Assembly (NCBI GenBank): GCA_002269645.1
Contig: NIVC01003504.1
Span: 30,611-94,610, forward strand
DNA from: Macrostomum lignano
Lineage: Eukaryota
Reading direction: 5' to 3'
DNA length: 64,000 nt
Part shown: positions 36,501-60,596 of the stretch, piece by piece
Layout: each line of letters opens with the position of its first letter
Numbering within the stretch: the first letter of the stretch is position 1
Position numbers and translations under genes: made by a program
The notes under the pieces: generated by a model
Seen by the model: only the letters and a program-made list of their open reading frames with translations
Told to the model about the DNA's origin: nothing
Databases searched by the model: none

Positions 36501-37234
36501 CACAGAGTGGCCCCAGTCCAGAGACTGCTCACCTTGCACAGACACAGAGTGGCCCCAGTCCAGAGACTGCTCACCTTGCACAGACACAGAGTGGCCCCAG
36601 TCCAGAGACTGCTCACCTTGCACAGACACAGAGTGGCCCCAGTCCAGAGACTGCTCACCTTGCACAGACACAGAGTGGCCCCAGTCCAGAGACTGCTCAC
36701 CTTGCACAGACACGGCTGGTTCCGCACATAGCTCGTCACCAGCTCTGCCGCATCGCAGGTCAGCACCAATGTCGGAGGCAGATGCGGCGCCGGTGACTGC
36801 ATCAGCATCTCATGCGGCGCCCGCAGCCACAGATAAGCCTCCTCGCAGGCGTCCATCAGCTGATGAAAGAAGCGCGGTATTAAACTCCGGCCGATGCAGT
36901 AGGATTTGGGCGGCAGGGCTACTCCGTCCTCCTCCATCAGCGACACCTGAAGCTGGGCGTCGTCCTCGAAGAATTCAGCACCGAACGCGTCCCACCAGAG
37001 CATCGGGGTGTCGCGAGGCCGCTGGGTCAGCCTGTTGTTCAAGTCGTGCACCCGCAGGTCGCCGCTGGTTTGTCCCGGACCCATCGGCCCAGGCGGCGGG
37101 CCGGGCACGAAGGTGTGCGGCGGGAGCGGCGGCCGCATCGTTGGTGGGTGAAGATGCTGGCCATGGTGCAGCATGGGGTGAAGATGCTGGGGCGGCGGTG
37201 GCGGCGGCGGCGGCCCGGGCGGCCCAGTCCGCAT
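33513..37234 (-). CDS. LDB1: LIM-domain-binding protein (LDB1/LDB2/Chip)
   Basis: Exons 37234-36701, 36051-35734 and 34223-33513 (1563 nt, in frame). Dimerisation domain LRVHDLNNRL..WWDAFGAEFFEDDA..YCIGRSLIPRFF; LCCD-region VLEPMQAMM..LEPRECLKQ; LIM-interaction domain EVMVVGEPGLMGGQACQEDERLITRLEN. An acceptor near 37341 suggests a further upstream exon. Confidence 0.93.
34245..35665. repeat. 20-24-bp minisatellite (GGAATGGGAGCTTATTCACA[ACA]) in LDB intron 2
   Basis: Direct tandem copies. Confidence 0.95.
36090..36712. repeat. 42-bp minisatellite in LDB intron 1 built from the exon/intron junction
   Basis: Unit (- strand) CTGTGTCTGTGCAAG|GTGAGCAGTCTCTGGACTGGGGCCACT; 15 copies of the donor motif. 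Confidence 0.95.
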
Positions 37235-38229
37235 GAAGTAGACAGGATCCAGAATTGTGGCAGGCTGGTAGCCTGTGATTTTGTGCCCGCAGCGCTGCTT
37301 GTGAATGACGACAGGGCTGCCGACGCACTGCTGACAGCCGCTGTGGGGTAAAGCAAGGATGCTTTAAAGAAATGCATGATAATGAATGCAAATAGGTAAT
37401 ATTTGTGATACTAGTATGTTATCATATCCTTTTGCCTTTTAACTTTCTTGTACATCTATGAACTAACTGTTTATTTCCTCTTATGCTGTTGCCAATAAAA
37501 GTTCAGCATATTTCTTTTAAAAATTCTTTCAATTTTTTTTACTTTCTTCTAATTTAGATGAAGTTATTGTCTTTCTACTCTATATAATATTTAGCAAATT
37601 ATTTGGTATTTCTGCTATTAAATTAAGTTACAAAGTTGATGAATTTCATTATAATATACAAATGAAACAATAAAAAAGAATATAATAGAATATTTGCTTA
37701 ACAGAGTAAAAAGATAGACACATGATTTTTATTGTCCATTCAACATAGCAATTTTTATAGATGTATTGACTGTATCTTGAAGGTAATTGTAGATAGCCTA
37801 CCAGTAACACTAACTAGGAGAAAGTTGAGGTAGTAGCCAAGCTGCTTGCTAAGGACTGTTAGATTCAAGTTGCCACAAATTATGCATACTCTAGGCATCT
37901 TAGCTAGGTTAATAAATGAGATCCTATGCCAAATCCTAAGGTAAAACAAGATCAGTGCCTAATACTCGTAGATGCCCTAAATGGTTTTATAAGACCATAA
38001 GCAGAACTTACTCAGCTCTTATTGGCTTATGCTTGGACTTCTACAATGAGAATCTAGATAGATTTGAATGACAAATCATAACTAAAGATAAGTGCTAGAT
38101 CTACCACTATGACCTCAAGTCTATTCTATATTCATTGAGTGCAAGATTCTATAGTGACAGTGCCCTTGGATAGAGAAAGGACCTTTGCAAGTTCAAGTAA
38201 GCAAAGTTGGCTAGCAAGATCTTAGACTA

Positions 38230-39561
38230 CGAGGGGCATTCAAAAAGTTTTGGCAACTGCATATGCAGATATACTTTGGCTCAAGCAAAACGCACTAAAT
38301 TTTAGGGACATTTTTAGTAACATGCCTGAGACCACCATATAAATTTTCAGCTCAATGGCTTCACCCGTTATTGCACAATTCACACCTAACCATACCTACG
38401 TTTCAGCTTCTGACAAATTATGGAAAATATCAGCTCAGAAAACACGCGCTTCTACATCTTCATGCGCGCACAACTTGGAGAAAACGCCACCAAAATCCAT
38501 GCCAACTTAGCACAGGTGATAGGGGATCAAGCTCCATCTTATCGCACCGTTGCGCGATGGATTGAGGCTTTTGGCGCCGGCAGGAGCAGCCTCTGTGACG
38601 ACCCTCGATCGGGGAGGCCGAGCACAGCCGTGACCAAGAACAACATTGACGCTGTGCAATCGCTGGTGGCTGAGGACCCAAACATTTCTGTTGCCATGCT
38701 GAGCCAGACACTTGACATATCTGAGGGCAGCGTTTTCACCATCCTGCATGAGCAGCTGGGGCTCAGGAAGATCACAGCTCGTTGGGTGCCACATCAGCTC
38801 ACTGAGGAGCAGCGCCAGGAGCGGGTTCGCTGCAGTCAGGAGTTCTTGCGCTGCTTCGGTTCTGGCGGCACCAAGCGCCTCTCTGACATTGTCACCGGTG
38901 ACGAGAAGTGGTTTTACTACTTCCAGGTGCCCAACAAGAGCCAGAACAAGGTTTGGACTGGCGCAGATGAAGAGCGTCCAACAGTTCTGCGATCAGGATT
39001 TCGCTCACGCAAGCAGATGTTCGTTGTGTTCTTCAGCATCTGTGGCCCAGTAGCTGTTGTCATGGTGCCCAAAGGCCAGAATGTGAACGCCAGCTTCTAC
39101 ACCAGCACTGCCCTGCCAGCTGTCGTTGATTTCGTGCGGCAAAATCAACGCACGCGCTTGGAGTCAGGTCGCATCCACCTTTACCATGACAATGCGTCAA
39201 GCCATACTGCGGCGATGACTTCAGCATTTCTGGAGGAGAACCGGCTGAAAACCGTTCGCCACCCGCCCTACAGCCCGGACTTGGCTCCGTGCGACTTCTG
39301 GGCCTTCCCGAAACTGACCGAGAGGCTGGCTGGGCGCCAATTTCAGAGGCCGCAAGACCTGGCGCGCGCTATCAATTCAGAGTTGAGGGCATTCACTGAA
39401 TCGGAGTACCGCGGCGCCTTTGATTCGTGGCTACGGAGGCATCAGAAGTGCATAGAGCGCGGCGGAGACTACATAGAAGGACTGTAAACCCTTACTTTTA
39501 GAATAATGAGCTTGCACTAGATTTTAGTAGCCTGTTGCCAAAACTTTTTGAATACCCCTCG
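38230..39561 (+). mobile_element. Full-length mariner (Tc1/mariner, DD34D) DNA transposon
   Basis: 28-bp TIRs CGAGGGGCATTCAAAAAGTTTTGGCAAC / GTTGCCAAAACTTTTTGAATACCCCTCG (1 mismatch), TA duplicated on both sides, 1332 bp. Confidence 0.96.
38420..39487 (+). CDS. Mariner transposase, 355 aa, uninterrupted
   Basis: WVPHQL, IVTGDEKW, YHDNASSH and HPPYSPDLAPCDF motifs; 34 residues between the second and third Asp. Confidence 0.96.
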   Translation: MENISSENTRFYIFMRAQLGENATKIHANLAQVIGDQAPSYRTVARWIEAFGAGRSSLCDDPRSGRPSTAVTKNNIDAVQSLVAEDPNISVAMLSQTLDISEGSVFTILHEQLGLRKITARWVPHQLTEEQRQERVRCSQEFLRCFGSGGTKRLSDIVTGDEKWFYYFQVPNKSQNKVWTGADEERPTVLRSGFRSRKQMFVVFFSICGPVAVVMVPKGQNVNASFYTSTALPAVVDFVRQNQRTRLESGRIHLYHDNASSHTAAMTSAFLEENRLKTVRHPPYSPDLAPCDFWAFPKLTERLAGRQFQRPQDLARAINSELRAFTESEYRGAFDSWLRRHQKCIERGGDYIEGL

Positions 39562-40421
39562 TATTTTTAGGATTATCAAGGGATCTTGCTTGCCAAATAC
39601 CTACTTATAAAACATATAGGTATATACTCGTAGGTATAGTAAATTTAGTAGTAGTAGTAAAGTAGTAGTAAATTTGGCTTAGGCTTAAGGAGCCTGTTAT
39701 GCCAGTATGATTCGATTTATTTAGTATTTATTCAAAAGGTTAAATTTTACACGATTGCTGAAAACGAGTACTACTATAGCTTTATATTGAATAGCTAAGC
39801 TAGCTTCTTAGGCAATTGTCCAAAAAAGCAGGGGAAACTAAATGCTAGCTAAATGCTTTATGACAATGTACCAGTTCATACTGCCTAGGTTGTAATGAAT
39901 GTTGCCATCATTGTGGGGTTTGAAATCCTCTCCTATTTGGCCTATTGACTAGACTAGACCTGGTATTTTCCAACTATTGTCTATTTTATTAAATTAAGCA
40001 ATTACTTTATAATTATAAGTACCATTTCAAATCTAATAAATAGGTCATTCTTCTTACCAACTAGTGGCTAGAGGCCAACTGACTGAGTTATATACTAGAG
40101 TATTTAGGCATCATGTGACCAATGGCAGAAGTGCTTTAATTGCTAGCCAAAGGGACTATGTTGAAAAATAATGTAACATTATTATAAAATTTATACACTT
40201 AAACTATACAAACAACAAAACTTTTTGAAACCCTTTTATATGTATAAGCTTTAAAAGCCAATAATAACAATATGGCAAAATTAAGATCTAATCATTAAAA
40301 TATAACAACCCAAATACACAAATGCAACTTTTATAGGTCTTATATAGGGGTCAAATAGATCTTAATCTTGATCTCGATTGTGTTAAGATCATGGTAGTTT
40401 TTTAAATAGATCCTAATCAAA

Positions 40422-41996: not shown

Positions 41997-42681
41997 ATGA
42001 AACTTTACACAGAGTAAACTGCAACCGTGAAACGACTATTGGTCAAGTTTCAGCTCGATATGTAACTTTGGCTCTGAGCAGGAGCGATTTTCGATGTGTT
42101 CCATTTAAAATACATGTGATTCCAAAATTCATATTGATATTCGAGTACAGGTACTTCTGCTTCACCGATCTTGACGAAACTTTACACAGAGTAAACTGCA
42201 ACCGTGAAACGACTATTGGTCAAGTTTCAGCTCGATATGTAACTTTGGCTCTGAGCAGGGGCGATTTTCGATGTGTTCCATTTAAAATACATGTGATTCC
42301 AAAATTCATATTGATATTCGAGTACAGGTACTTCTGCTTCACCGATCTTGACGAAACTTTACACAGAGTAAACTGCAACCGTGAAACGACTATTGGTCAA
42401 GTTTCAGCTCGATATGTAACTTTGGCTCTGAGCAGGGGCGATTTTCGATGTGTTCCATTTAAAATACATGTGATTCCAAAATTCATATTGATATTCGAGT
42501 ACAGGTACTTCTGCTTCACCGATCTTGACGAAACTTTACACAGAGTAAACTGCAACCGTGAAACGACTATTGGTCAAGTTTCAGCTCGATATGTAACTTT
42601 GGCTCTGAGCAGGGGCGATTTTCGATGTGTTCCATTTAAAATACATGTGATTCCAAAATTCATATTGATGTTCGAGTACAG
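41997..42681 (+). repeat. 177-bp tandem array, left arm (~3.9 units)
   Basis: 59-aa periodic ORF; near-identical units starting GAAACTTTACACAGAGTAAAC. Confidence 0.95.
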
Positions 42682-45171
42682 GTGGAGGAGATGGCGCAAC
42701 GTGACACAGTGGTCATTCTCGGAGACCTGAACGCAGTTCTGCGTAGGTCCGAGCGATCGCTGTTTGTGACAGCGCGCGAGAACGGCAACACCGGAGCGCT
42801 AGAGGACTTCCTGGAGAGACAGGACATGGTGTCGGCCAACACCAGATTCCGCAAGTCACCGGGCAGGCTCGCGACCTTCGTGGGCTGCAAGCGGAGGCGG
42901 CGGAACGCGCGCGGCCGGAACGCTACGCGGAGGCTGGCACAGCTCGACCACGTGCTTGTGCGCTTTCGTGTGCGCCGCCGCGTCACCAACTGCCGCACCA
43001 TTACGCCGCTGGCTCTGCGGTCCGACCATCGGCTGCTCATCTGCGACCTTCGGCTTCGGGACCCGCTCTACCGTCCGCCAAAGCGGCCACCGCGGCGCTA
43101 CTACGTCGCTTTGCCGGTGCCTTTGTCACTGCGCTGGGCGACAAGCGTGGAGGAGCCGAGTACGCGGAGGTGAGCGCTGCAGTTCGAGCCGATGCGGAGC
43201 AAGCAGTCCCACTGATGCGACCGGCCCAGCGGTCTGGCAGGACGACCCGCGATCGACGAAGCGAGGGAAGATCTGGAGAGGCTCCGTCTGAGTGGGCGGC
43301 AAACTCGCGAGGCGGAGGAGGCTCTGGCGGCTGTCTACCTGCAGCGGCAGCAGTCCGCTGTCGATGACGCCAACCAAGCCGTCTCTGCCGCAGGGCCCGA
43401 TTCCAGAGGGCGCGTGGCCTGGTCCGTCATCAACACTCTGACGGGGCGAAAGCGGCGCATCGCGCTCAACCAGGCAGGCGACATTCCGGATGAGCGCAGG
43501 TACGAGCTGCGCGAGTTCTTCGCCGCCATTGTCAACGCGCCGCCCCCTCCGCTTCCAGAAAATCTGAGGCTGCCGCCGGAGACGCCGTTGCCGGCGGAGG
43601 AGAGCTTCAACGTTGCCCCAGTCAGTACAGCCGACGTTGTGAAGTTCGCTCGGCAGTCGCCGGGCGCCAAAGCGCTTGGTCCGGACGAGATGCCCACCGA
43701 GGCGCTGCGGATCCACTGCGTGGCCACTGAGGTCGCCAGAGTGATGAACCGCGTGCTTTCCGGTGAGGTGGCGCCAAACGAATGGACCACGGCGCACATC
43801 GTCGCCATTCCAAAGAAGCCGGGCACCACCAAGCTCGAGGAGCATCGAGGCATCTGCCTACAATCCTGCGCCGCGAAGCTGTTCAGCCGCATGCTGCTAT
43901 CGCGGTTGCAGACTGTGCTGGACCCGTACCTGTGGCCTGAGCAGAACGGATTCCGGCCCCATCGCAGCACAGTGACGCAGATCCTGGCTCTTCGGCGAGT
44001 CATCGAGGAGGCGCGCATCCGCCAGTTGACCCTGATCCTGATCTTCGTCGATTTCAGGAAGGCCTTCGACTCGGTCGTGAGGGACGCGCTCCCAGAGGTG
44101 CTCCGTGCGTACAACGTGCCAGACCTGCTGATTTCTGCTGTCATGGCGCTATACCACGGCACGACGGCTGCTGTCTCAACACCGGACGGCCTATCGGATT
44201 TCTTCGAGACATCCTCCGGGGTGCTCCAGGGAGATACGCTAGCGCCGTTCCTATTTATTCTGGTGCTTGACTGGGTGCTACGGACTGCTCTGCCTTCCAA
44301 CGACGACGGCTTCCTGCTGCGGCGACGCGTGGGTCGACGCCAACCGGAGAGACGGCTCAGCGTGCTTGGCTACGCCGATGACCTCGCCCTGCTGTCCTCG
44401 ACCGTCGAGGGCGCCCAACGACAGCTGGACAGACTGGTTGCCGTTGCGGCGAGCGTCGGCCTGGTGGTCAACACGCAGAAGACCGTCGTGCTATGCGTGC
44501 CGGACGACACCGAGGCTGCAATCTTCTGCCGAGGCGCTGACGGACAGGCGAGTGAGCTTCCAAGATGTCAGCAGTTCGTCTACCTCGGCGGTCTGGTTCC
44601 CGACGTCCGCGAGGATCTGCGGCGTCGACGAGGACTTGCCTGGGCTGCCTTTCGTTCTATAAGGTCAGTCCTGCAGTCCGAGGCCCTACCGGACCGCCAG
44701 AGGGCGGCGCTGTTCCAGGCGGTGATCGAGACCGTCCTGTTATACAACGCCGAGACCTGGACGCTGATAGACTCGCTCGAGGCTCAAGTCGACGCGGCGC
44801 ACGCTGGCCTGCTGCGCGCCGCCTTCAAGATCGGCAACGAGCGAGTCACCAACACGGCGCTCTATCATCGCGCCGGCCTGGCCCGTCCTAGCGATCTGCT
44901 GCGCCGTCGGCGACTCCAGCTGGCAGGCCACGTCATCCGCGCCGAGGCCTACTGTCCGGAGCCGGTGCAGGAGGTGCTGCTACTTACGTTGCAGGCACCC
45001 TACCGGCGGGGACAGGCGAGGACTCGGCGCTACGTCGACTGTCTGCTGGCTGACGCCGGCGCCCCGGACTCTGCCGGCGGTGCGGCTTTTGTTCGCGCCC
45101 AAGCTTCGAAGCGCGCCATCTGACGCTGCTTTTGCGAACTGGCAGCGTACTCTGTTGTTGTTGTTGTTGTT
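42682..45171 (+). mobile_element. 5'-truncated RTE-clade non-LTR retrotransposon (APE endonuclease remnant plus RT)
   Basis: APE motifs ILGDLNA, LDHVLV and SDHRLL (42682-43173), then a frame break; RT ORF follows; very short 3' UTR and (TGT)n tail at 45153-45171. Confidence 0.92.
43414..45123 (+). CDS. Non-LTR reverse transcriptase (RTE-like), 569-aa ORF
   Basis: GPDEMP, EQNGFR, FVDFRKAFDSV, GVLQGDTLAPFLF, YADDLALL, GLVVNTQKT and FVYLGG motifs. Confidence 0.93.
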   Translation: MAWSVINTLTGRKRRIALNQAGDIPDERRYELREFFAAIVNAPPPPLPENLRLPPETPLPAEESFNVAPVSTADVVKFARQSPGAKALGPDEMPTEALRIHCVATEVARVMNRVLSGEVAPNEWTTAHIVAIPKKPGTTKLEEHRGICLQSCAAKLFSRMLLSRLQTVLDPYLWPEQNGFRPHRSTVTQILALRRVIEEARIRQLTLILIFVDFRKAFDSVVRDALPEVLRAYNVPDLLISAVMALYHGTTAAVSTPDGLSDFFETSSGVLQGDTLAPFLFILVLDWVLRTALPSNDDGFLLRRRVGRRQPERRLSVLGYADDLALLSSTVEGAQRQLDRLVAVAASVGLVVNTQKTVVLCVPDDTEAAIFCRGADGQASELPRCQQFVYLGGLVPDVREDLRRRRGLAWAAFRSIRSVLQSEALPDRQRAALFQAVIETVLLYNAETWTLIDSLEAQVDAAHAGLLRAAFKIGNERVTNTALYHRAGLARPSDLLRRRRLQLAGHVIRAEAYCPEPVQEVLLLTLQAPYRRGQARTRRYVDCLLADAGAPDSAGGAAFVRAQASKRAI

Positions 45172-46362
45172 TGGAATCACATGTATTTTAAATGGAACAC
45201 ATCGAAAATCGCTCCTGCTCAGAGCCAAAGTTACATATCGAGCTGAAACTTGACCAATAGTCGTTTCACGGTTGCAGTTTACTCTGTGTAAAGTTTCGTC
45301 AAGATCGGTGAAGCAGAAGTACCTGTACTCGAATATCAATATGAATTTTGGAATCACATGTATTTTAAATGGAACACATCGAAAATCGCCCCTGCTCAGA
45401 GCCAAAGTTACATATCGAGCTGAAACTTGACCAATAGTCGTTTCACGGTTGCAGTTTACTCTGTGTAAAGTTTCGTCAAGATCGGTGAAGCAGAAGTACC
45501 TGTACTCGAATATCAATATGAATTTTGGAATCACATGTATTTTAAATGGAACACATCGAAAATCGCTCCTGCTCAAAGCCAAAGTTACATATCGAGCTGA
45601 AACTTGACCAATAGTCGTTTCACGGTTGCAGTTTACTCTGTGTAAAGTTTCGTCAAGATCGGTGAAGCAGAAGTACCTGTACTCGAATATCAATATGAAT
45701 TTTGGAATCACATGTATTTTAAATGGAACACATCGAAAATCGCCCCTGCTCAGAGCCAAAGTTACATATCGAGCTGAAACTTGACCAATAGTCGTTTCAC
45801 GGTTGCAGTTTACTCTGTGTAAAGTTTCGTCAAGATCGGTGAAGCAGAAGTACCTGTACTCGAATATCAATATGAATTTTGGAATCACATGTATTTTAAA
45901 TGGAACACATCGAAAATCGCTCCTGCTCAAAGCCAAAGTTACATATCGAGCTGAAACTTGACCAACAGTCGTTTCACGGTTGCAGTTTACTCTGTGTAAA
46001 GTTTCATCAAGCTCGGTGAAGCAGAAGTACCTGTACTCGAATATCAATATGAATTTTGGAATCACATGTATTTTAAATGGAACACATCGAAAATCGCTCC
46101 TGCTCAGAGCCAAAGTTACATATCGAGCTGAAACTTGACCAATAGTCGTTTCACGGTTGCAGTTTACTCTGTGTAAAGTTTCATCAAGATCGGTGAAGCA
46201 GAAGTACCTGTACTCGAATATCAATATGAATTTTGGAATCACGTGTATTTTAAATGGAACACATCGAAAATCGCTCCTGCTCAGAGCCAAAGTTACATAT
46301 CGAGCTGAAACTTGACCAATAGTCGTTTCACGGTTGCAGTTTACTCTGTGTAAAGTTTCATG
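45172..46362 (-). repeat. 177-bp tandem array, right arm (~6.7 units, inverted relative to left arm)
   Basis: Same 59-aa periodic ORF on the - strand. Confidence 0.95.
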
Positions 46363-49618: not shown

Positions 49619-52600
49619 ATGGAGAAAGTCACCTATAGAGTAGTAGAGGAGTGCATTAGCCGCCTGAATGAGATCTATCATCAGCATCCACATGAGCCGG
49701 AGGTTGCTCTGTTCTGCCCAGATGCGGCCAGCCTGCGTCACCGATTGAAGTCCACGCTATTGAAGATTATCTTTCTGACGCCGGCTGATTTCGGCGCCAA
49801 AGGCGAAGACATTCTATGGCGCAAAGGCTTCTACGAGGTGTTGGCTTGCATTAAAAAGTACCGCCAGTCCAACAGGCTCTCGGGGCAGGTTGAGGCCCTG
49901 TACCGGGCGCATCTGATCAGCGGGCTGGGCTTCTACAATCAGTTGCTCTCCCGGGTGCTGCTGGAGTATCCGGTGGCAGCTGACGACGCTGCCGGCCTCG
50001 CCGAGGTGGCCGCTGTTGGTTGCGCCGATTTTGCACCGGCGCCGAAGCTTCTACTTAGCGCCGACCTGACTACCGATGCTGGCGCCAACGCTGCCGCCGC
50101 GGACTGGGCGCGCGGCGCCGTGCACAGGTGCCTGATGCACATCGGGGATCTGTACAGATATCTGCGCGAGTTTCAAGGCGAAGTGGCGCTGGCGCTTGTT
50201 CAGCGCTATTACGGCGCCGCTGCCAGATTTGAGCCCATGATTGGCCTGCCGTACAACCAGCTGGGCACATTGGATGTTGGCAACTACTACAACCTCACTG
50301 CCGTGTATTATTATCTTAGGTGCGCTGCTGTTTGTTAAAACTTAGCTGCTAGGGAGGACGAACACACAGCTGGAATCTGGATAATTCCACACTAATATGC
50401 ACACCGATAATCGCATTCGAAATCCTTTCTACTTATTTTGTTCCTGCAGATGCCTGGCCTGCGAGCAGCCGTTCGAAGGCTCCAGACGCAACCTGGCCAA
50501 AATTTTAAACAAAAATCAGCGCCGATTCGAATCCCTGCCACCGTTGGATTCCGCGGCGGCAGCTGCCGGTTCTGCCGAAGCCGGCCGACCGCACAAGCCC
50601 GTGAAGCAGTTCGCTGTGCGGTTTGTTTATCTGATTGGCCGCCTGCTGCAGCCTCACCAGCTGATGCAGCATCAGCGGCGTCAAAACTACCGTCAGCTTG
50701 ACGCCGAGCTGAACGCGCTGTGCCAGTCAGTCCTTGCCGGCCTCTCAGTCTGCCTGTCCGACTGCGACGATGGCGACGAAGCCGCATGCCTGGCCGTGCG
50801 CGCCTCCGAGGTCGACCCGATGCGGCCGCACCGCCTGGCCGACTCTGCTGTGCTGCAGGCCGCGCTGGCCGCCGTCCTCTGCCTGGACTCGCTGGCGGCC
50901 GCCAACTCCCGACATGCGCACGCCTGCACCGCCTTCTGCCTGGGCCTGTTTGCCTGCGTGCTGCGCTGCGCCCTGGCCAGGTGCCGGCACGCGCTGCAGA
51001 CCGTGGCGACTGCGGCACCCACGGCTGAGCTTGACGCTGGGGAGCCGACTGCTGATGACAGCGATGTCGATGAAGACGATGCAGCTGCAGAAGAGGTCGA
51101 AGGCGGCGGGGAGGACGAAGACGAAGACGATGCTGCCGGCGATTTTCACGGCTTCTCCGCTCCGAGGCTGCGTCGACGACGTCGAAGGAGGCGGCGACGG
51201 CGCGGCTCTGGCAGTGAAGGCGATGCTTTTTCGTCATCGGGCGAGTCCAGCGACTGTCAGTTGGCGTTCGGTTACGACGAGGATGACGAGGAGGTTGAAG
51301 GCGAGGATGGAGAAGTTGGAAGGGAAGGAGAGGACAGCAACGCCGAAGATGAGGCCGCAATGGCTGCGGCCGACCCACCGTCGACCAGCGTTGGCGGCGG
51401 CGGCGGCCTGCCGTCGTTTTGCTTCAGCTACGGCATTCCATCAGCGTTGATGTTTCACGACGAAGAGAACGACGATAAGTCGGAGGCTGCAGAGTTGGGT
51501 CAGGATGGCCCGCCTGCTGATGCAGAAAATTCCAACGCAAACGTCTCGACTGTTTGTGAGGCGGATGCGCAAAAGGACGATTCCACTGCGGCCGCTGCCG
51601 AGGCCGTTGAATTGGCAATTAGTCGGGTTCGCCTGCTGCAGACTGTCAAACTGCTGCTAGACTGGATGCTGTGCCAGCCTCATCTCCTCAGCCGAGCAGT
51701 GCAGGTGAGCTTTGAGCTTGGCTTTTCGCCAAAATGCAGACAAAGGGTGTTGCCAAAGGGTTTCCAAAAAATCGTCATACTACTTCTAGCATTGCATATC
51801 AGCAGTCAAAGTTACTCCGGCCTTTCACCCGAACTTCCACAGTCTTCCTGCCTGCCGCTGTGGGACAGTCTGTCAGCTTTGCTCAACCTGCTGCCCGCTC
51901 CGCCTGGCGAGGACAGCGGCGTCATCTGCCCGGAGCCGGAGCGCTCGGCAGCCCTGCCGGAGGACGCGCACGCCCGCGGCCTCCGCCTGTTCCAGCCGGT
52001 GCAACGCCACCTGGACTTCGCCGCCGCCGGCCAGGCTGCCCGTCTGGATGAGTCGCGCCTGCGCCTGGCCGCCATCCGCCGGTTCGGCTTCCTGGCTGTG
52101 CAGAATGACCAGCTGGCGTTCGAGTTCGACTCGACTGCTGGCCACTTTCTGGGGCCAACGGCTGTCGCACAGGCCAGCAGGGATGCCCAGATGCGGAATC
52201 TGGCCCAGCTGCGCCTCATCAATCAGGTGCAGCAGTTGGAGTCCGCCGTGTCTCAGGCGACGCCAGCAATCACCGTGAGCTCCTCAAGTGCCAATTATTA
52301 ATTAACTGCAAGTTTGTCAGTCGGCTCGCTTACATTACTAACAGTAGCTTACCCGTCCATTTTCGCTCCGCAGTCGTCGCACGCCATTCCGTCGCGTCGG
52401 TGCCTCACAGACGGCCTCGACCGGCTGAAAGCCTTGGTCAGCAGTCGGCGCTGCATCCTGGTGCTGCCGCGCAGCTCCATCGACTATCTGGACAGGCTGA
52501 AGCAGACCAGCCAGGCTGCCAGGCGCGCCAGCCGTTTCCTAGAAACCGAGCTCCAGTCGGGCCGCGGCCTTATCAACACGCACGATTATCCATCCTTGAC

Positions 52601-53177
52601 TGCCTGCGCCAAGCAGCTGGCCCCGGCCACCACCGTATTCCTGATTTGCCGCGGCGAGTCTCCGCCCCAGCTTGAGCTGCCGTTTCCAGTGCGAGAGCTG
52701 CACGAATTCGTGCGACAGGCTTGGCGCCGGGCCAAGCTGGTTGAGCACTCGAGACCTGTTGCTATGGGGAAGGGCGGCAGTTCAAATCATTACTTCGGGT
52801 GTGTCATAAGTAATGTCACTGATGTGAAAACAGACGAACTTGCAATCGCAGATGAACAAAACTGTACCACTCAACAACATAGAGTCCCCCAATATCAATC
52901 ACCCTCTGGCAGTGCTCATACAGCTTGTCTACCTCAGCCTACAGGTGTTTTTCCTCCAACTGCCGTATCCAGTGCAACGCGGCCTGTTTTACCTCTTCAT
53001 GGTTTGCGAAACCTTCTTGGAAAATTCAGCCTTCAGCCATTTGAACAGGAATCTCTTGCACAAGTTGAAGTCCGGGCTGTAGGGACTCTGTCAGAGCAGA
53101 TTCACTCGAAAATTCGAAACAGCCTTCAGGTGTGCAGCCGTGCGGTGTCCATCTGCCACAGAACCTCGTCCAGGTGA
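49619..53177 (+). CDS. SMG5: Nonsense-mediated decay factor SMG5 (EST1/TPR domain plus catalytically degenerate PIN)
   Basis: Exons 49619-50319, 50450-51704, 51843-52274 and 52374-53177 (3192 nt, in frame). EDILWRKGFYEV, YRAHLISGLGFY, HRCLMHIGDLYRY, GLPYNQLGTL, YYYLRC; acidic insertion; PIN-like LVLPRSSIDYLDRLKQ..ARRASRFLETE with the first acidic site absent (IPSR), as expected for SMG5 rather than SMG6. Confidence 0.9.
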
Positions 53178-53750
53178 CATGGATTTGACCGCAGATTGCG
53201 CCAGAGGTCTCCAGTGTGCCGGATAAAGTCGATAAAGTACTGGCCATCGACCTTGGTGTTCGGTGGAGTTGTGCAGATGGAGACTCGTTCATTTGGCGTG
53301 AAGGCTACCAGCAGCATGGTCTTCTTGTCCAAGATGGACTTCCTGGTCACAGTCGCCCTGGAGTCCCCAGCTCCCAGCCAGCAGCGATTGTCTGCCTTGC
53401 TGCCCTTGCCATCCAGGTGGAGCCAGCTTTCATCCTCAGCAACCAGGCAGTTTAGGATGTCATTCAAGCCCCGCCTGCTGAACACCTTGCGAATCTGCTT
53501 GATGCAGGCGTCTTGTCGAGATTCATGGTGATTTTTGTTCGCTGCATAGACGATTTTTCATCGCGTTGCACTTGCTAAATCTGCTTGGCGTATTCTTGCG
53601 ATAGCTTGGGCCATAAACAACCTATGCACGTCTCAAATGCGCTGCTATTGCTTCACTAAGTATACTTTGCAGCTACGCTACCCACAAGTCCATGTGCCTA
53701 CATATTTTAGACAGAGGCCTGCAGTGACATTACTTATGACACACCCGAAG
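52793..53750 (-). mobile_element. Internally deleted mariner-like transposon inserted in the last SMG5 exon
   Basis: Perfect 29-bp TIRs CTTCGGGTGTGTCATAAGTAATGTCACTG / CAGTGACATTACTTATGACACACCCGAAG; TA TSD; 958 bp; - strand transposase fragments AEDESW, WQMDTARLH and SPYSPDFNLC, with stops and frameshifts. Confidence 0.92.
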
Positions 53751-53859
53751 TATTTTCTTATTAAGGAGAAATGGTGCTTTTGATCTTGTGTTTGGGCTGT
53801 AATTGTAGTTATTAATTCTATAGTCCGTTATCCGAAATTAGCGTTTACGATCCACCCTT

Positions 53860-54215
53860 CCAAATCCTCAGATGTGATCCTCCACCCTCCCAGATCCTCA
53901 GGTGTGATCCTCCACCCTCTCAGATCCTCATGTGTGATCCGCCACTCTCCAAAATCCTCAGGTGTGATCCGCCACTCTCCCAGATCCTCAGGTGTGATCC
54001 GCCACTCTCCCAGATCCTCAGGTGTGATCCGCCACTCTCCCAGATCCTCAGGTGTGATCCGCCACTCTCCCAGATCCTCAGGTGTGATCCGCCACTCTCC
54101 CAAATCCTCAGGTGTGATCCGCCACTCTCCCAAATCCTCAGGTGTGATTCGCCACCCTCCCAGATCCTCAGGTGTGATCCGCCACTCTCCCAGATCCTCA
54201 GGTGTTAACTGCCAC
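53860..54215. repeat. 30-bp minisatellite (GATCCTCAGGTGTGATCCGCCACTCTCCCA)
   Basis: Direct tandem copies. Confidence 0.95.
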
Positions 54216-54569
54216 CCTCTCAAATACTTCAAAACCAGTTTCTAGCTTAAGAGCAGCAGTTTCGCACCTAAATTATCCATAATAATATTTTACTCCAGAT
54301 ACGCCAGTCTTTAAATAATTAGTCTATCGTGCTGGATAGTCTATCGGACTACCAATTCTAACAATAATACTTTATGGTTGTCACTGACTAGTTATATACA
54401 CTGTTTTCTGCTTTTTAGCAGTAGTAATTTTGGTTGCCTTGCCGCGCGCATATCTGTGTGCTTTTAGTGTACTTTTAATAAACAGTGATTAAGAAATCGC
54501 TTTGCGTGTCACGTGACTTTTGATTTTGCCGCGGTGCAGTTCTGGTTATTTTTATTTTATTTGTCTACA

Positions 54570-57500
54570 GGTGTCTGCCATTGAAGTATATCACTCGGGG
54601 TCTTTTATTAAAGTTTTTGTCACTTCAGTGTCTACCGTTGAAGGGTCCGTCTCTCGAGTGTCTGTCACTCTGGTGTCTTCGATTGAAGTTTCTGTCACTC
54701 GGGTGTCTGCTATTTAGGTTTCTGTCACTCAGGTGTCTGTCATTCCGGTGTCTACCATTGAGGTGTCTGTCACTCCGGTGTCTACCGTTGAAGTGTCTGT
54801 CTCTCGGGTGTCTGCTATTGAAGTGTCTCTCGAGTGTCTGCTATTGAAGTGTCTCTCGAGTGTCTGCTATTGAAGTGTATGTCTCTCGGGTGTCTGCTAT
54901 TGAAGTGTCTCTCGAGTGTCTGCTATTGAAGTGTCTGTCTCTCGGGTGTCTGCTATTGAAGTGTCTCTCGAGTGTCTGCTATTGAAGTGTATGTCTCTCG
55001 AGTGTCTGCTATTGAAGTGTCTGTCTCTCGAGTGTCTGCTATTGAAGTGTATGTCTCTCGAGTGTCTGCTATTGAAGTGTCTGTCTCTCGAGTGTCTGCT
55101 ATTGAAGTGTATGTCTCTCGAGTGTCTGCTATTGAAGTGTATGTCTCTCGAGTGTCTGCTATTGAAGTGTATGTCTCTCGAGTGTCTGCTATTGAAGTGT
55201 ATGTCTCTCGAGTGTCTGCTATTGAAGTGTATGTCTCTCGAGTGTCTGCTATTGAAGTGTCTGTCTCTCGAGTGTCTGCTATTGAAGTGTATGTCTCTCG
55301 AGTGTCTGCTATTGAAGTGTCTGTCTCTCGAGTGTCTGCTATTGAAGTGTATGTCTCTCGAGTGTCTGCTATTGAAGTGTCTGTCTCTCGAGTGTCTGCT
55401 ATTGAAGTGTATGTCTCTCGAGTGTCTGCTATTGAAGTGTATGTCTCTCGAGTGTCTGCTATTGAAGTGTATGTCTCTCGAGTGTCTGCTATTGAAGTGT
55501 ATGTCTCTCGAGTGTCTGCTATTGAAGTGTATGTCTCTCGAGTGTCTGCTATTGAAGTGTATGTCTCTCGAGTGTCTGCTATTGAAGTGTCTGTCTCTCG
55601 AGTGTCTGCTATTGAAGTGTATGTCTCTCGAGTGTCTCCTATTGAAGTGTATGTCTCTCGAGTGTCTGCTATTGAAGTGTATGTCTCTCGAGTGTCTGCT
55701 ATTGAAGTGTCATTCGGTGTCCTCTATTGAAGTGTCTGTCTCTCGAGTGTCTGCTATTGAAGTGTATGTCTCTCGAGTGTCTGCTATTGAAGTGTATGTC
55801 TCTCGAGTGTCTGCTATTGAAGTGTCTGTCTCTCGAGTGTCTGCTATTGAAGTGTCTGTCTCTCGAGTGTCTGCTATTGAAGTGTATGTCTCTCGAGTGT
55901 CTCCTATTGAAGTGTATGTCTCTCGAGTGTCTGCTATTGAAGTGTATGTCTCTCGAGTGTCTGCTATTGAAGTGTCATTCGGTGTCCTCTATTGAAGTGT
56001 CTGTCTCTCGAGTGTCTGCTATTGAAGTGTATGTCTCTCGAGTGTCTGCTATTGAAGTGTATGTCTCTCGAGTGTCTGCTATTGAAGTGTCATTCGGGTG
56101 TCCTCTATTGAAGTGTCTGTCTCTCGAGTGTCTGCTATTGAAGTGTATGTCTCTCGAGTGTCTGCTATTGAAGTGTATGTCTCTCGGGTGTCTGCTATTG
56201 AAGTGTCTCTCGAGTGTCTGCTATTGAAGTGTCTGTCTCTCGGGTGTCTGCTATTGAAGTGTCTCTCGAGTGTCTGCTATTGAAGTGTATGTCTCTCGGG
56301 TGTCTGCTATTGAAGTGTCTCTCGAGTGTCTGCTATTGAAGTGTCTGTCTCTCGGGTGTCTGCTATTGAAGTGTCTCTCGAGTGTCTGCTATTGAAGTGT
56401 ATGTCTCTCGAGTGTCTGCTATTGAAGTGTCTGTCTCTCGAGTGTCTGCTATTGAAGTGTATGTCTCTCGAGTGTCTGCTATTGAAGTGTCTGTCTCTCG
56501 AGTGTCTGCTATTGAAGTGTATGTCTCTCGAGTGTCTGCTATTGAAGTGTATGTCTCTCGAGTGTCTGCTATTGAAGTGTATGTCTCTCGAGTGTCTGCT
56601 ATTGAAGTGTATGTCTCTCGAGTGTCTGCTATTGAAGTGTATGTCTCTCGAGTGTCTGCTATTGAAGTGTCTGTCTCTCGAGTGTCTGCTATTGAAGTGT
56701 ATGTCTCTCGAGTGTCTGCTATTGAAGTGTCTGTCTCTCGAGTGTCTGCTATTGAAGTGTATGTCTCTCGAGTGTCTGCTATTGAAGTGTCTGTCTCTCG
56801 AGTGTCTGCTATTGAAGTGTATGTCTCTCGAGTGTCTGCTATTGAAGTGTATGTCTCTCGAGTGTCTGCTATTGAAGTGTATGTCTCTCGAGTGTCTGCT
56901 ATTGAAGTGTATGTCTCTCGAGTGTCTGCTATTGAAGTGTATGTCTCTCGAGTGTCTGCTATTGAAGTGTATGTCTCTCGAGTGTCTGCTATTGAAGTGT
57001 CTGTCTCTCGAGTGTCTGCTATTGAAGTGTATGTCTCTCGAGTGTCTCCTATTGAAGTGTATGTCTCTCGAGTGTCTGCTATTGAAGTGTATGTCTCTCG
57101 AGTGTCTGCTATTGAAGTGTCATTCGGGTGTCCTCTATTGAAGTGTCTGTCTCTCGAGTGTCTGCTATTGAAGTGTATGTCTCTCGAGTGTCTGCTATTG
57201 AAGTGTATGTCTCTCGAGTGTCTGCTATTGAAGTGTCTGTCTCTCGAGTGTCTGCTATTGAAGTGTCTGTCTCTCGAGTGTCTGCTATTGAAGTGTATGT
57301 CTCTCGAGTGTCTCCTATTGAAGTGTATGTCTCTCGAGTGTCTGCTATTGAAGTGTATGTCTCTCGAGTGTCTGCTATTGAAGTGTCATTCGGTGTCCTC
57401 TATTGAAGTGTCTGTCTCTCGAGTGTCTGCTATTGAAGTGTATGTCTCTCGAGTGTCTGCTATTGAAGTGTATGTCTCTCGAGTGTCTGCTATTGAAGTG

Positions 57501-60500
57501 TCATTCGGGTGTCCTCTATTGAAGTGTCTGTCTCTCGAGTGTCTGCTATTGAAGTGTATGTCTCTCGAGTGTCTGCTATTGAAGTGTATGTCTCTCGGGT
57601 GTCTGCTATTGAAGTGTCTCTCGAGTGTCTGCTATTGAAGTGTCTGTCTCTCGGTGTCTGCTATTGAAGTGTCTCTCGAGTGTCTGCTATTGAAGTGTAT
57701 GTCTCTCGAGTGTCTGCTATTGAAGTGTCTGTCTCTCGAGTGTCTGCTATTGAAGTGTATGTCTCTCGAGTGTCTGCTATTGAAGTGTATGTCTCTCGAG
57801 TGTCTGCTATTGAAGTGTATGTCTCTCGAGTGTCTGCTATTGAAGTGTATGTCTCTCGAGTGTCTGCTATTGAAGTGTATGTCTCTCGAGTGTCTGCTAT
57901 TGAAGTGTATGTCTCTCGAGTGTCTGCTATTGAAGTGTATGTCTCTCGAGTGTCTGCTATTGAAGTGTCTGTCTCTCGAGTGTCTGCTATTGAAGTGTAT
58001 GTCTCTCGAGTGTCTGCTATTGAAGTGTCTGTCTCTCGAGTGTCTGCTATTGAAGTGTATGTCTCTCGAGTGTCTGCTATTGAAGTGTATGTCTCTCGAG
58101 TGTCTGCTATTGAAGTGTATGTCTCTCGAGTGTCTGCTATTGAAGTGTATGTCTCTCGAGTGTCTGCTATTGAAGTGTATGTCTCTCGAGTGTCTGCTAT
58201 TGAAGTGTATGTCTCTCGAGTGTCTGCTATTGAAGTGTATGTCTCTCGAGTGTCTGCTATTGAAGTGTATGTCTCTCGAGTGTCTGCTATTGAAGTGTCT
58301 GTCTCTCGAGTGTCTGCTATTGAAGTGTCTGTCTCTCGAGTGTCTGCTATTGAAGTGTATGTCTCTCGAGTGTCTCTATTGAAGTGTATGTCTCTCGAGT
58401 GTCTGCTATTGAAGTGTATGTCTCTCGAGTGTCTGCTATTGAAGTGTCATTCGGTGTCCTCTATTGAAGTGTCTGTCTCTCGAGTGTCTGCTATTGAAGT
58501 GTATGTCTCTCGAGTGTCTGCTATTGAAGTGTATGTCTCTCGAGTGTCTGCTATTGAAGTGTCTGTCTCTCGAGTGTCTGCTATTGAAGTGTCTGTCTCT
58601 CGAGTGTCTGCTATTGAAGTGTATGTCTCTCGAGTGTCTCCTATTGAAGTGTATGTCTCTCGAGTGTCTGCTATTGAAGTGTATGTCTCTCGAGTGTCTG
58701 CTATTGAAGTGTCATTCGGTGTCCTCTATTGAAGTGTCTGTCTCTCGAGTGTCTGCTATTGAAGTGTATGTCTCTCGAGTGTCTGCTATTGAAGTGTATG
58801 TCTCTCGAGTGTCTGCTATTGAAGTGTCATTCGGTGTCCTCTATTGAAGTGTCTGTCTCTCGAGTGTCTGCTATTGAAGTGTATGTCTCTCGAGTGTCTG
58901 CTATTGAAGTGTATGTCTCTCGAGTGTCTGCTATTGAAGTGTATGTCTCTCGAGTGTCTGCTATTGAAGTGTATGTCTCTCGAGTGTCTGCTATTGAAGT
59001 GTCTGTCTCTCGAGTGTCTGCTATTGAAGTGTATGTCTCTCGAGTGTCTGCTATTGAAGTGTATGTCTCTCGAGTGTCTGCTATTGAAGTGTATGTCTCT
59101 CGAGTGTCTGCTATTGAAGTGTATGTCTCTCGAGTGTCTGCTATTGAAGTGTATGTCTCTCGAGTGTCTGCTATTGAAGTGTCTGTCTCTCGAGTGTCTG
59201 CTATTGAAGTGTCTGTCTCTCGAGTGTCTGCTATTGAAGTGTATGTCTCTCGAGTGTCTGCTATTGAAGTGTCTGTCTCTCGAGTGTCTGCTATTGAAGT
59301 GTATGTCTCTCGAGTGTCTGCTATTGAAGTGTATGTCTCTCGAGTGTCTGCTATTGAAGTGTATGTCTCTCGAGTGTCTGCTATTGAAGTGTATGTCTCT
59401 CGAGTGTCTGCTATTGAAGTGTATGTCTCTCGAGTGTCTGCTATTGAAGTGTCTGTCTCTCGAGTGTCTGCTATTGAAGTGTATGTCTCTCGAGTGTCTG
59501 CTATTGAAGTGTATGTCTCTCGAGTGTCTGCTATTGAAGTGTATGTCTCTCGAGTGTCTGCTATTGAAGTGTATGTCTCTCGAGTGTCTGCTATTGAAGT
59601 GTATGTCTCTCGAGTGTCTGCTATTGAAGTGTATGTCTCTCGAGTGTCTGCTATTGAAGTGTCTGTCTCTCGAGTGTCTGCTATTGAAGTGTATGTCTCT
59701 CGAGTGTCTGCTATTGAAGTGTCTGTCTCTCGAGTGTCTGCTATTGAAGTGTATGTCTCTCGAGTGTCTGCTATTGAAGTGTATGTCTCTCGAGTGTCTG
59801 CTATTGAAGTGTATGTCTCTCGAGTGTCTGCTATTGAAGTGTATGTCTCTCGAGTGTCTGCTATTGAAGTGTATGTCTCTCGAGTGTCTGCTATTGAAGT
59901 GTATGTCTCTCGAGTGTCTGCTATTGAAGTGTATGTCTCTCGAGTGTCTGCTATTGAAGTGTCTGTCTCTCGAGTGTCTGCTATTGAAGTGTCTGTCTCT
60001 CGAGTGTCTGCTATTGAAGTGTCTGTCTCTCGAGTGTCTGCTATTGAAGTGTCTGTCTCTCGAGTGTCTGCTATTGAAGTGTATGTCTCTCGAGTGTCTG
60101 CTATTGAAGTGTATGTCTCTTGGGTGTCTACCATTGAAGTTCTGTCTCTCGAGTGTCTGCTATTGAAGTGTCTGTCTCTCGAGTGTCTGCTATTGAAGTG
60201 TCTGTCTCTCGAGTGTCTGCTATTGAAGTGTATGTCTCTCGAGTGTCTGCTATTGAAGTGTATGTCTCTCGAGTGTCTGCTATTGAAGTGTATGTCTCTC
60301 GAGTGTCTGCTATTGAAGTGTCTGTCTCTCGAGTGTCTGCTATTGAAGTGTATGTCTCTTGGGTGTCTACCATTGAAGTTCTGTCACTCGGTGTCTGCTA
60401 TTTAGGTTTCTGTCACTCGGGTGTCTTCGTTGAAGTGTCTGTCTCTTGGGTGTCTACCATTGAAGTTTCTGTCACTCGGGTGTCTGCTATTTAGGTTTCT

Positions 60501-60530
60501 GTCACTCGGGTGTCTTCGTTGAAGTGTCTG
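54570..60530. repeat. ~6-kb array of a 30-bp unit (TCTCTCGAGTGTCTGCTATTGAAGTGT[A/C]TG) with higher-order structure
   Basis: Roughly 200 tandem copies; homogeneous centre, diverged edges. Confidence 0.97.
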
Positions 60531-60596
60531 TCGCCGAACCGCTCACATCCCCCGCCGCTGCCCACCACTCCTGCGCAAGCAGCCGCCACCGCAAGA

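Follow-up and report, generated by a model that had tools for sequence, protein, structure and literature searches.

In Macrostomum lignano, an internally deleted transposon of the mariner family has inserted into an unconstrained tail of the last exon of one SMG5 copy. The TA dinucleotide at the target is duplicated, the corresponding site is empty in a paralog, and the open reading frame of the assembly now runs from SMG5 into the antisense strand of the transposon. We think that this is probably an ordinary copy-specific mariner insertion that has no function, is neutral and is buffered by the other SMG5 copies. The window analyzed here is a 64,000-nucleotide stretch of contig NIVC01003504.1 from the M. 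lignano assembly Mlig_3_7.

The host gene and the inserted element

The 958-bp element lies in the last exon of the SMG5 copy Mlig016494.g1/g3 (g1/g3 in what follows). The gene model is as follows.

49619-50319, + strand: SMG5 exon 1, with the ATG and the EST1 domain (splice-site reading, Pfam, CDS length equal to that of P0006)
50450-51704, + strand: SMG5 exon 2 (acceptor read from the sequence; donor of the extra intron from comparison with P0001)
51843-52274, + strand: SMG5 exon 3, following an in-frame 138-nt intron (GT...AG)
52374-52792, + strand: host part of the last SMG5 exon, with a degenerate PIN-like domain, the conserved FVRQAW motif and 23 more codons to the TA of a Tyr codon

The 46 residues that the extra in-frame intron (51705-51842, GT...AG) could encode are missing from the proteins P0001, P0006 and P0007, and with this intron in the model the product is therefore 1063 rather than 1109 residues long. 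The 1063-aa product (P0006) is already in GenBank as PAA51103.1/PAA70146.1, a "hypothetical protein" present on two contigs, which differ at two bases over 5.4 kb, both of them intronic. P0006 matches the Pfam families PF10374 (EST1; E 6e-13) and PF10373 (EST1_DNA_bind; E 5.6e-24). In a one-way search, all named matches of the protein were SMG5, from M. lignano (UniRef), Haplochromis and Echinococcus, and the best named matches were the fish and Echinococcus proteins. Fish SMG5 aligns with exon 4 over residues 963-1029, inside its own PIN_4 match (E 3e-11), and the PIN regions of flatworm SMG5 proteins align with it too; Pfam PIN_4 itself gave no match on the M. lignano protein. By homology, then, the host gene is SMG5, with a predicted role in nonsense-mediated decay (NMD). 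A literature search on Mlig016494 found no paper.

The inserted element has these features.

52793-53750, - strand (transposase sense): non-autonomous mariner-like element, 958 bp (inverted ends, flanking TAs, homology)
52791-52792, unstranded: left TA target-site copy (flank reading, comparison with g2)
53751-53752, unstranded: right TA target-site copy (flank reading, comparison with g2)
52793-52821, + strand: 29-nt terminal inverted repeat, CTTCGGGTGTGTCATAAGTAATGTCACTG; the ends of L005, an intact relative, differ from it at one base
53722-53750, - strand: second terminal inverted repeat, the perfect complement of the first
52870-53539, - strand: transposase remnant, catalytic domain only, with frameshifts, stops and homology to Mos1

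A preliminary description of this locus had placed a 958-bp mariner-like element at the TA of a TAC codon, and the inverted repeats, the TA duplication and the homology to Mos1 all agree with that placement. Counted with the TA, the inverted repeat is 31 nt long (52791-52821 and 53722-53752) and 100% complementary. Its 29-nt end occurs twice in the window, both times at an end of the element, where no occurrence is expected by chance.

The transposase is dead. Its remnant carries two stops and at least two frameshifts, one of them between the second and third catalytic positions, and the third catalytic Asp has become Lys (YSPDFNLCK). An internal deletion of ~390 bp has removed the N-terminal DNA-binding domain. 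Once stitched together, the remnant could be aligned from end to end with the catalytic domains of Mos1 (PDB 4mda/2f7t/3hos; E ~1e-5; residues 8-223 aligned) and SETMAR (E ~1e-4). In Pfam it matched DDE_3 alone, at 25.5 bits, which is under the 28.6 cut-off, and neither the remnant nor its intact relative P0016 matched Transposase_1 (PF01359), the curated mariner model. P0016 is 370 aa long, 82% identical and matches DDE_3, HTH_32 and HTH_48. It is carried by L005, a 1364-bp contig that has TA at each end and an inverted repeat with one base different; the window element corresponds to the L005 element minus ~390 bp. Identity to the nearest intact element is 83-87% (Logan runs SRR28338156, SRR28338164 and SRR28338166), and the copy of the element on a second M. 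lignano contig (L003) is 100% identical. Exactly 34 residues separate the second and third Asp in the intact relatives P0016-P0019 and P0030, which points to a D,D(34)D triad in the lineage that the dead window copy no longer has. Judged by these alignments, the element is an internally deleted, non-autonomous mariner of the DD34D lineage, Tc1/mariner superfamily, and it would have been mobilized in trans. A second mariner in the window (~38.2-39.6 kb) was rejected as the mobilizer; its ends are different, and identity between the transposases is only 33%.

In the paralog g2 (L001, NIVC01000236.1) the site is empty and contains one TA, ...TCAAATCAT-TA-TTTTCTTATTAAGG. The alignment across the joined flanks is clean, with no footprint at the g2 site. 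The insertion is thus copy-specific, as had been proposed earlier: it is present in g1/g3, on both of the near-identical g1/g3 contigs, and absent from g2. The assembly is redundant because the DV1 line has extra large chromosomes (PMC5730564). Approximately 47 exonic differences separate g1 from g2. The preliminary description also took the perfect inverted repeats to suggest a recent insertion; the comparison with g2 sets a bound on its age rather than an estimate, in that it is younger than the g1/g2 split (dS 0.041). We propose that the element entered one SMG5 haplotype or paralog by cut-and-paste, at a TA in its 3' end and after its divergence from g2. The conserved parts of the protein, namely the F-x-x-x-W motif, the PIN-like domain and the EST1/TPR region, would have been left intact.

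The reading frame across the junction

The following features determine where SMG5 ends.

52721-52722, + strand: TT run that sets the reading frame (TTT in g2; P0001 and P0008 of ML2 have C-termini that fit TTT)
52742-52744, + strand: TGA, the stop in g2 and presumably in the ML2 models, out of frame in g1/g3
52794-53174, + strand: 127 SMG5 codons that the element supplies (FGCVISN...HRTSSR), read antisense to what is left of the transposase and equal to the C-terminus of P0006
53175-53177, + strand: TGA that closes the ORF in the assembly and in the GenBank annotation (translation)
53753-53783, + strand: AT-rich stretch, now displaced, in which the frame-A ORF used to end (..FLIKEKWCF, TGA 53781-53783), with CGA in place of the stop in g2

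The host frame crosses into the element within the codon TAC, of which TA belongs to the host and C to the element. It then continues antisense through the element to the TGA at 53175-53177, the same path that had been traced before, and its 127 element codons reproduce the GenBank product. Removal of the element and one TA was said to restore a host ending, and the joined flanks indeed read ...SNHYFLIKEKWCF*, with TGA at 53781-53783. As assembled, the last nine SMG5 codons are swapped for 127 transposon-derived ones, and the predicted host/element junction peptide is GGSSNHYFGCVISNVTDVK. The Mlig_3_7 annotation combines a genome-guided RNA-seq assembly with TransDecoder (PMC5730564), and the GenBank CDS from this RNA-seq-guided annotation continues across the junction. 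Exact-product look-ups in public read assemblies with P0001, the 287-aa junction ORF, the 119-aa remnant ORF and Cpn10, the neighboring gene of this SMG5 copy, returned Mlig_3_7 and nothing else.

The entry frame is unusually open. Only 63 of 20,000 shuffles of the element were open for as long in that frame, and the other five entry frames stop after 4-23 codons, so the long tail reflects a lucky frame rather than a general property of the element. Intact relatives also contain antisense open runs of 84-114 codons, which makes the openness a compositional by-product. An origin as the mirror image of the transposase frame was considered and rejected: the register agrees over only part of the tail, and we therefore attribute the openness to composition and chance.

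The coding status of the insertion site hinges on a single base, the TT at 52721-52722. Here g1/g3 reads GCT-TGG and g2 reads GCTTTGG. With TT, the sequence encodes Trp (TGG 52722-52724) followed by the long frame-A tail, and g1/g3 consequently lacks the nearby stop of the other copies; with TTT, the protein ends in ...QALAPGQAG*. The protein of g2 (P0007) and the proteins P0001 and P0008 of the older assembly, ML2, all end in ...VRQALAPGQAG*, and P0001 is 100% identical to the g1/g3 protein up to the frame shift. The TGA at 52742-52744 lies 47 nt 5' of the insertion TA; since the stop is upstream of the TA in g2, P0001 and P0008, the insertion site is 3' UTR in all three, and comparison of the sequences assigns it to the 3' UTR in every other known M. 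lignano SMG5 copy. The preliminary description had the transposon inserted before the stop codon, which is true of the sequence as assembled with TT, and not of g2, P0001 and P0008, which stop 47 nt upstream. It had also named an upstream ancestral stop as a finding that would count against it, and the other copies come close to this, for they end at the TGA equivalent to 52742-52744.

A less likely but plausible reading is that this is a pure 3'-UTR insertion in which the true base is TTT, SMG5 ends in ...QALAPGQAG* and the 1063-aa product is an artefact of a one-base consensus deletion. The ML2 and Mlig_3_7 assemblies share one PacBio data set, and consensus errors in PacBio data are mostly indels (PMC5730564); because the data are shared, TT may be such an error. 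On the other side, TT is found on both g1/g3 contigs, L002 and L003, which are separate. Illumina and RNA-seq reads served to polish Mlig_3_7, which reportedly has better base accuracy than ML2 (PMC5730564). TT also restores Trp and then Arg, adjoining the position of a Trp-Lys that the SMG5 proteins of fish, tapeworm and fluke conserve; an error would hardly be expected to do so. The short ending regains ground from its occurrence on three other haplotype backgrounds (g2, the g1-like P0001 and P0008, an ML2 mosaic) and from its fit to the tail length of orthologues. In addition, a substitution at 52738 is synonymous in the short frame and non-synonymous in the long frame, and the third-position GC content (GC3) collapses right past the short stop.

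If the assembled TT is correct, as in our preferred account of an ordinary insertion that joins the SMG5 frame, translation would run without a near stop through 23 unconstrained host codons and 127 antisense codons to the TGA at 53175-53177. The added tail would most likely be an extension without function.

Constraint on the tail and the length of the 3' UTR

The C-terminal comparison used five orthologue sequences, because an exhaustive search with exon 4 among representative sequences gave seven matches that all lay in the first half of the PIN-like domain. The orthologues stop 4-8 residues past the conserved Trp of the F-x-x-x-W motif. The tail of g1/g3, at 32 residues, is lineage-specific. 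Its distal host part has a GC3 of 0.44 versus 0.72 (P = 0.003), a non-coding composition, and the drop begins just past the TGA at 52742-52744. Compared with g2, the tail shows four changes in 104 nt, which amount to three amino-acid changes and a lost stop (CGA), and its divergence is approximately the synonymous rate. Taken together, composition and divergence show that the tail struck by the element is unconstrained, and it looks non-coding.

A one-base deletion and a transposon would be two independent lesions at the C-terminus of one haplotype, and there are other copies in the genome. This would suit a g1/g3 that is a decaying redundant duplicate under relaxed constraint, with low expression or already turning into a pseudogene. 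We consider this unlikely, because the 2.7-kb CDS is otherwise intact, GT-AG is preserved at all three introns, dN/dS against g2 is 0.24 (dS 0.041) and the gene was kept in an RNA-seq-based annotation (PMC5730564). The dN/dS ratio argues that the g1/g3 gene is under selection.

Two features bear on the 3' UTR.

53852-54219, unstranded: 3'-UTR array of 12 tandem 30-bp repeats (g2 has one very much like it)
54477-54482, + strand: nearest canonical AATAAA on the 3' side, likely to be the poly(A) signal whether or not the element is present (motif scan)

The sense strand of the element contains neither AATAAA nor ATTAAA. The old signal at 54477 is kept, and an AATAAA is also present in the corresponding region of g2, 3' of its tandem array. 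The earlier statement that the 3' UTR is replaced is therefore not supported; the arrangement of signals indicates that it would be made longer instead. The mRNA is most likely transcribed through the element to the signal at 54477, with a predicted gain of ~0.6 kb, or ~1 kb should translation really end at the upstream stop. The insert would roughly double the length of the 3' UTR.

In flies and mammals, NMD acts directly on Smg5 mRNA by way of its long 3' UTR (PMC3962487, PMC3763533). Together with the doubled 3' UTR and the rare openness of the entry frame, this raises the idea of co-option, in which the tail or the longer 3' UTR gives a new protein function or an altered sensitivity to NMD feedback. 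ML2 also annotates the antisense ORF of a related element as a protein (P0005 and P0009; 66% identity to the tail), which fits the idea. Against it, the transposon-derived tail has no Pfam match and a GC3 of 0.38, the insertion is missing in g2, there is no sign of selection on the tail, and the long antisense runs of intact relatives show that such openness is not peculiar to this copy. A single-sequence structure prediction of exon 4 plus tail had a mean pLDDT of 38, low in the tail and poor throughout, and was uninformative. A homologue search with exon 4 plus tail returned P0005 only; it missed P0001 and P0006 and is thus uninformative about other tails. We regard co-option as highly improbable.

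Our preferred account remains an ordinary insertion that is neutral or perhaps mildly deleterious. It would be tolerated because the neopolyploid genome has other SMG5 copies. It is very unlikely, and would in any case depend on expression of this copy, that a one-base deletion and a mariner, both after the recent genome duplication, mark an early transposon-driven divergence of duplicated RNA-surveillance genes. If they did, a 7-residue C-terminus would have given way to ~150 new residues, and NMD feedback or the action of the protein could be altered. For the locus to be relevant to the divergence of duplicated surveillance genes, the occupied copy would have to be expressed and the longer 3' UTR would have to alter NMD feedback.

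The chief consequence is a warning about annotation. PAA51103.1 and PAA70146.1 end in 127 residues that a dead mariner encodes on its antisense strand, and their reading frame is one base off that of every other M. lignano SMG5 copy. The insertion site can also be used as a presence/absence marker between SMG5 copies, and the insertion shows that a DD34D mariner lineage was active after the genome duplication.

Comparison with known systems

The window element shares the TA duplication, inverted ends of ~29 nt and an alignable catalytic domain with mariners of the Mos1/Hsmar1 type, and its intact relatives also share the DD34D spacing, the HTH_48 domain and a length of ~1.36 kb. It differs in that its family matches DDE_3 rather than the classical Transposase_1. 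An autonomous mariner has ~1.3 kb and an intact ORF, whereas the window element has 958 bp, a broken frame and Lys for the third Asp.

The host protein has the EST1 and EST1_DNA_bind domains, the F-x-x-x-W motif and a putative C-terminal PIN-like domain in common with fish, Echinococcus and fluke SMG5. The first catalytic Asp of the PIN-like domain is not kept (IPSR in M. lignano, VPDT in fish), and the flatworm domain is shortened relative to other SMG5 proteins, with no match to Pfam PIN_4. Other SMG5 proteins end 4-8 residues past the Trp; g1/g3 adds 23 host and 127 transposon residues.

In SETMAR, the primate fusion of a SET gene with an Hsmar1 transposase, a mariner 3' of a host gene likewise joins the ORF of that gene. 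There splicing brings in the sense strand of the transposase, and the fusion protein has a function and is conserved. In contrast, the SMG5 frame enters the antisense strand of a dead transposase without splicing and shows no sign of conservation or function. A further parallel is transposon exonization in terminal exons, which supplies new end codons, a stop and extra 3'-UTR sequence, as seen here at the level of the assembly. The SMG5 insertion is of the same kind, and stands out only for a host gene that encodes an NMD factor and for a coding status that depends on one base.

The inserted element and its relatives

The SMG5 gene region of the window is identical at every base to locus L002 (contig NIVC01003504.1 of the Macrostomum lignano assembly Mlig_3_7, GCA_002269645.1). 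We placed the gene and the element within it as follows.

49619-50319: SMG5 exon 1
50450-51704: SMG5 exon 2
51843-52274: SMG5 exon 3
52374 onwards: SMG5 exon 4
52791-52821 and 53722-53752: perfect 31-nt inverted repeat, the outermost two bases of each arm being TA
52793-53750: mariner-like element proper, 958 bp, with 29-nt ends and TA on each side

The intron at 51705-51842 keeps the reading frame and therefore cannot be seen by an ORF scan. The host product carries the Pfam domains EST1 and EST1_DNA_bind, and its named relatives are SMG5 from fish and Echinococcus. Exon 4 matches the PIN_4 region of fish SMG5 (E 3e-11), and Pfam PIN_4 itself gave no score on the flatworm SMG5 protein. The first catalytic Asp of this PIN-like region is absent (IPSR vs VPDT in fish), consistent with the inactive PIN domain of SMG5.

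The 29-mer end of the element does not recur in the 64-kb window, and no recurrence is expected by chance. On the element's minus strand, transposase fragments are spread over three frames and interrupted by stops. When stitched together, they match the catalytic domain of Mos1 mariner (PDB 4mda, 2f7t and 3hos; E ~1e-5) over residues 8-223 and also align with SETMAR; Pfam detected only DDE_3 in the remnant, below threshold. The nearest protein in the public collection, P0016, is an intact 370-aa transposase that is 82% identical to the remnant and contains HTH_48, HTH_32 and DDE_3 domains. In P0016 and four further relatives, exactly 34 residues separate the second and third catalytic Asp. One 1364-bp contig encoding P0016 (L005) begins with TA-CTTCAGGTGTGTCATAAGTAATGTCACTG and finishes with its reverse complement plus TA, and is a complete mariner element: TA, inverted end, DD34D transposase, inverted end, TA. 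Its ends differ from those of the window element by one base, and the two share 83-87% DNA identity in two blocks. A stretch of ~390 bp (L005 244-633) is missing from the window element, and with it the N-terminal DNA-binding domain; the third catalytic Asp of the window copy is replaced by Lys. Together with the DD34D spacing of the relatives, these losses show that the SMG5 insert belongs to a DD34D mariner lineage but is dead and internally deleted, and must have been mobilized in trans by transposase from elsewhere. L005 is its likely autonomous relative. Three sequencing runs each yielded the complete mariner as a contig of its own (L005, from Logan SRR28338156, and also L004 and L006).

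A second, unrelated mariner-like element lies at 38221-39570. Its inverted ends, ~37 nt long, are imperfect, and its 355-aa transposase ORF (38420-39487, + strand), which appears intact, matches HTH_48, DDE_3 and Transposase_1. Because this transposase is just 33% identical to that of the SMG5 insert's relative and the ends are unlike, the element may represent a separate and potentially active family.

Copies of SMG5 and the empty site

The M. lignano SMG5 proteins form a 90%-identity cluster of four members. A second contig, L003 (NIVC01001263.1), carries the gene together with an element 100% identical to that of the window, and differs from the window at two positions in 5.4 kb, both intronic. 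L003 represents either an allelic version, a duplicate of very recent origin, or the same locus assembled twice; redundancy is documented for this assembly, and extra large chromosomes occur in the DV1 line (PMC5730564).

The paralog g2 (locus L001, NIVC01000236.1) shares its neighbors, Cpn10 and an aldehyde dehydrogenase gene, with the window. Upstream of the window SMG5 are a C2H2 zinc-finger ORF (20332-21774, - strand) and an exon of a LIM-domain-binding (LIM_bind) gene (36350-37234, - strand); a LIM_bind gene also adjoins g2 upstream, which supports synteny of the duplicated loci. Neither inverted repeat was found at L001. When the window flanks are joined, they match g2 without mismatch for >45 nt on either side of the junction, with a single TA and no excision footprint in the alignment. 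This is a clean empty site, and it bears out the suggestion that the insertion is paralog-specific: the insertion is confined to one copy and younger than the split between g2 and the insert-bearing copy g1 (dS 0.041, dN 0.0096, dN/dS 0.24). P0008 (UniProt A0A1I8IY61), an SMG5 protein from the older ML2 assembly, is a g2-like mosaic of g1-type and g2-type residues relative to P0006 and P0007, the g1 and g2 proteins, and represents either a further haplotype or an ML2 chimera between copies.

The surroundings are rich in repeats. A 30-bp tandem array occupies 53852-54219 within the SMG5 3' UTR, and g2 has an array that closely resembles it (L001 ~11270-11700). Between SMG5 and the Cpn10 gene, 196 copies of another 30-bp unit form an array of 5.8 kb (54748-60532), and the length of this intergenic space varies among the three loci. 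Intergenic space in window 1-49600 is filled by over 25 distinct short-period tandem arrays with periods of 12-177 bp and individual lengths of 0.3-1.6 kb. This agrees with a genome in which tandem and simple repeats are reported to make up 15%. Between two 177-bp tandem arrays that face opposite ways (41999-42683 and 45170-46359) lies a 569-aa ORF with a reverse-transcriptase domain (43414-45123, + strand); the whole stretch, 41999-46359, resembles a retroelement whose terminal arrays are unusual.

The reading frame and the rewritten tail

As assembled, the SMG5 frame runs from ...GGSSNH into TAC (host TA plus element C) and through 127 element codons to TGA at 53175-53177, giving a product of 1063 residues. 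Joining the flanks yields ...SNHYFLIKEKWCF*, exactly as first described, and the element, inverted repeats, TA pair and open frame all agree with the preliminary description. The product is present in GenBank as a "hypothetical protein" (PAA51103.1 / PAA70146.1, Mlig016494.g1 and.g3). This annotation derives from StringTie/TACO genome-guided transcript assembly and TransDecoder (PMC5730564), which is indirect support for transcription through the element rather than proof.

We read the open antisense frame as composition plus luck. Runs of 127 codons arise in 0.3% of element shuffles, the other five entry frames stop within 4-23 codons, and antisense runs of 84-114 codons are open in intact relatives. 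Two ML2 "uncharacterized proteins", P0005 and P0009 (UniProt A0A1I8HR76 and A0A1I8JI75), were called from the same antisense frame in a related mariner copy; they share 66% identity with the SMG5 tail and probably arose as similar artefacts of annotation.

The element was proposed to lie before the SMG5 stop codon. This holds formally in Mlig_3_7, but depends on a single base, with which all other known copies disagree. At 52719-52726 the window reads GCTTGGCG and g2 reads GCTTTGGCG; the extra T gives a protein ending ...FVRQALAPGQAG*, with its TGA at the equivalent of 52742-52744, 47 nt 5' of the insertion TA. Both ML2 proteins, P0001 and P0008, share the g2 ending, so the short ending occurs in three haplotype backgrounds, whereas the long frame is limited to two near-identical element-bearing contigs. 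In favor of TTT as the ancestral or true frame, the resulting tail has the length seen in orthologues, a substitution at 52738 is synonymous in that frame, the long-frame stop reads CGA in g2, and P0001 ends short despite being otherwise 100% identical to the window protein. In favor of TT, both element-bearing contigs agree, and its Trp-Arg adjoins the position of a Trp-Lys conserved in orthologues (fish FYRQWKEIG*, Echinococcus FAQRWKSRGRSEL*, fluke-like FIQRWKAIKT* and one further sequence). One PacBio data set underlies both assemblies; Mlig_3_7, which received polishing from Illumina and RNA-seq reads, is reportedly the more accurate of the two (PMC5730564). On balance, TT is reasonably probable as the true sequence of the element-bearing molecules, and parsimony across the copies inclines us slightly toward TTT as the ancestral state in M. 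lignano.

The tail itself is unconstrained whichever frame is used. SMG5 orthologues terminate 4-8 residues past the Trp of the conserved F-x-x-x-W motif, and the window copy without its element would extend 32 residues past it. Codons 8 to 32 after this Trp have a GC3 of 0.44, vs 0.72 for the coding sequence (binomial P = 0.003), and the final 15 codons are 27% GC. Over 104 nt, the tail differs from g2 by four changes (3.8%, approximately dS), namely three amino-acid changes and the stop loss. Judged by the orthologue endings, GC3 drop and divergence, the element inserted where the sequence has the character of 3' UTR. The nine residues lost to the element come from a tail with no sign of function, and the conserved domains and the F-x-x-x-W motif are intact upstream of the insertion.

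The 3' UTR and consequences for SMG5

The element's sense strand contains neither AATAAA nor ATTAAA. Canonical signals begin with AATAAA at 54477, past the 53852-54219 array, and in g2 an AATAAA (L001 12161) occupies the matching region beyond that copy's array. With this signal retained and none supplied by the element, the 3' UTR was most likely lengthened, in contrast to the replacement that had been proposed. Its predicted length grows from ~0.7 to ~1.3 kb with the stop at 53177, or from ~1.05 (measured in g2) to ~1.75 kb with the upstream stop. Neither stop is followed by an intron, so junction-dependent decay would not be predicted.

The preliminary interpretation is thus borne out in part. 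This is an ordinary case of transposition into a genome that is rich in repeats and recently duplicated. The element shows no sign of function in SMG5, and is useful chiefly as a caution on the annotation and as a marker for telling the gene copies apart. NMD targets the Smg5 mRNA of flies and mammals through its long 3' UTR (PMC3962487, PMC3763533), and it is therefore conceivable that the insert-bearing mRNA would have altered sensitivity to the same feedback.
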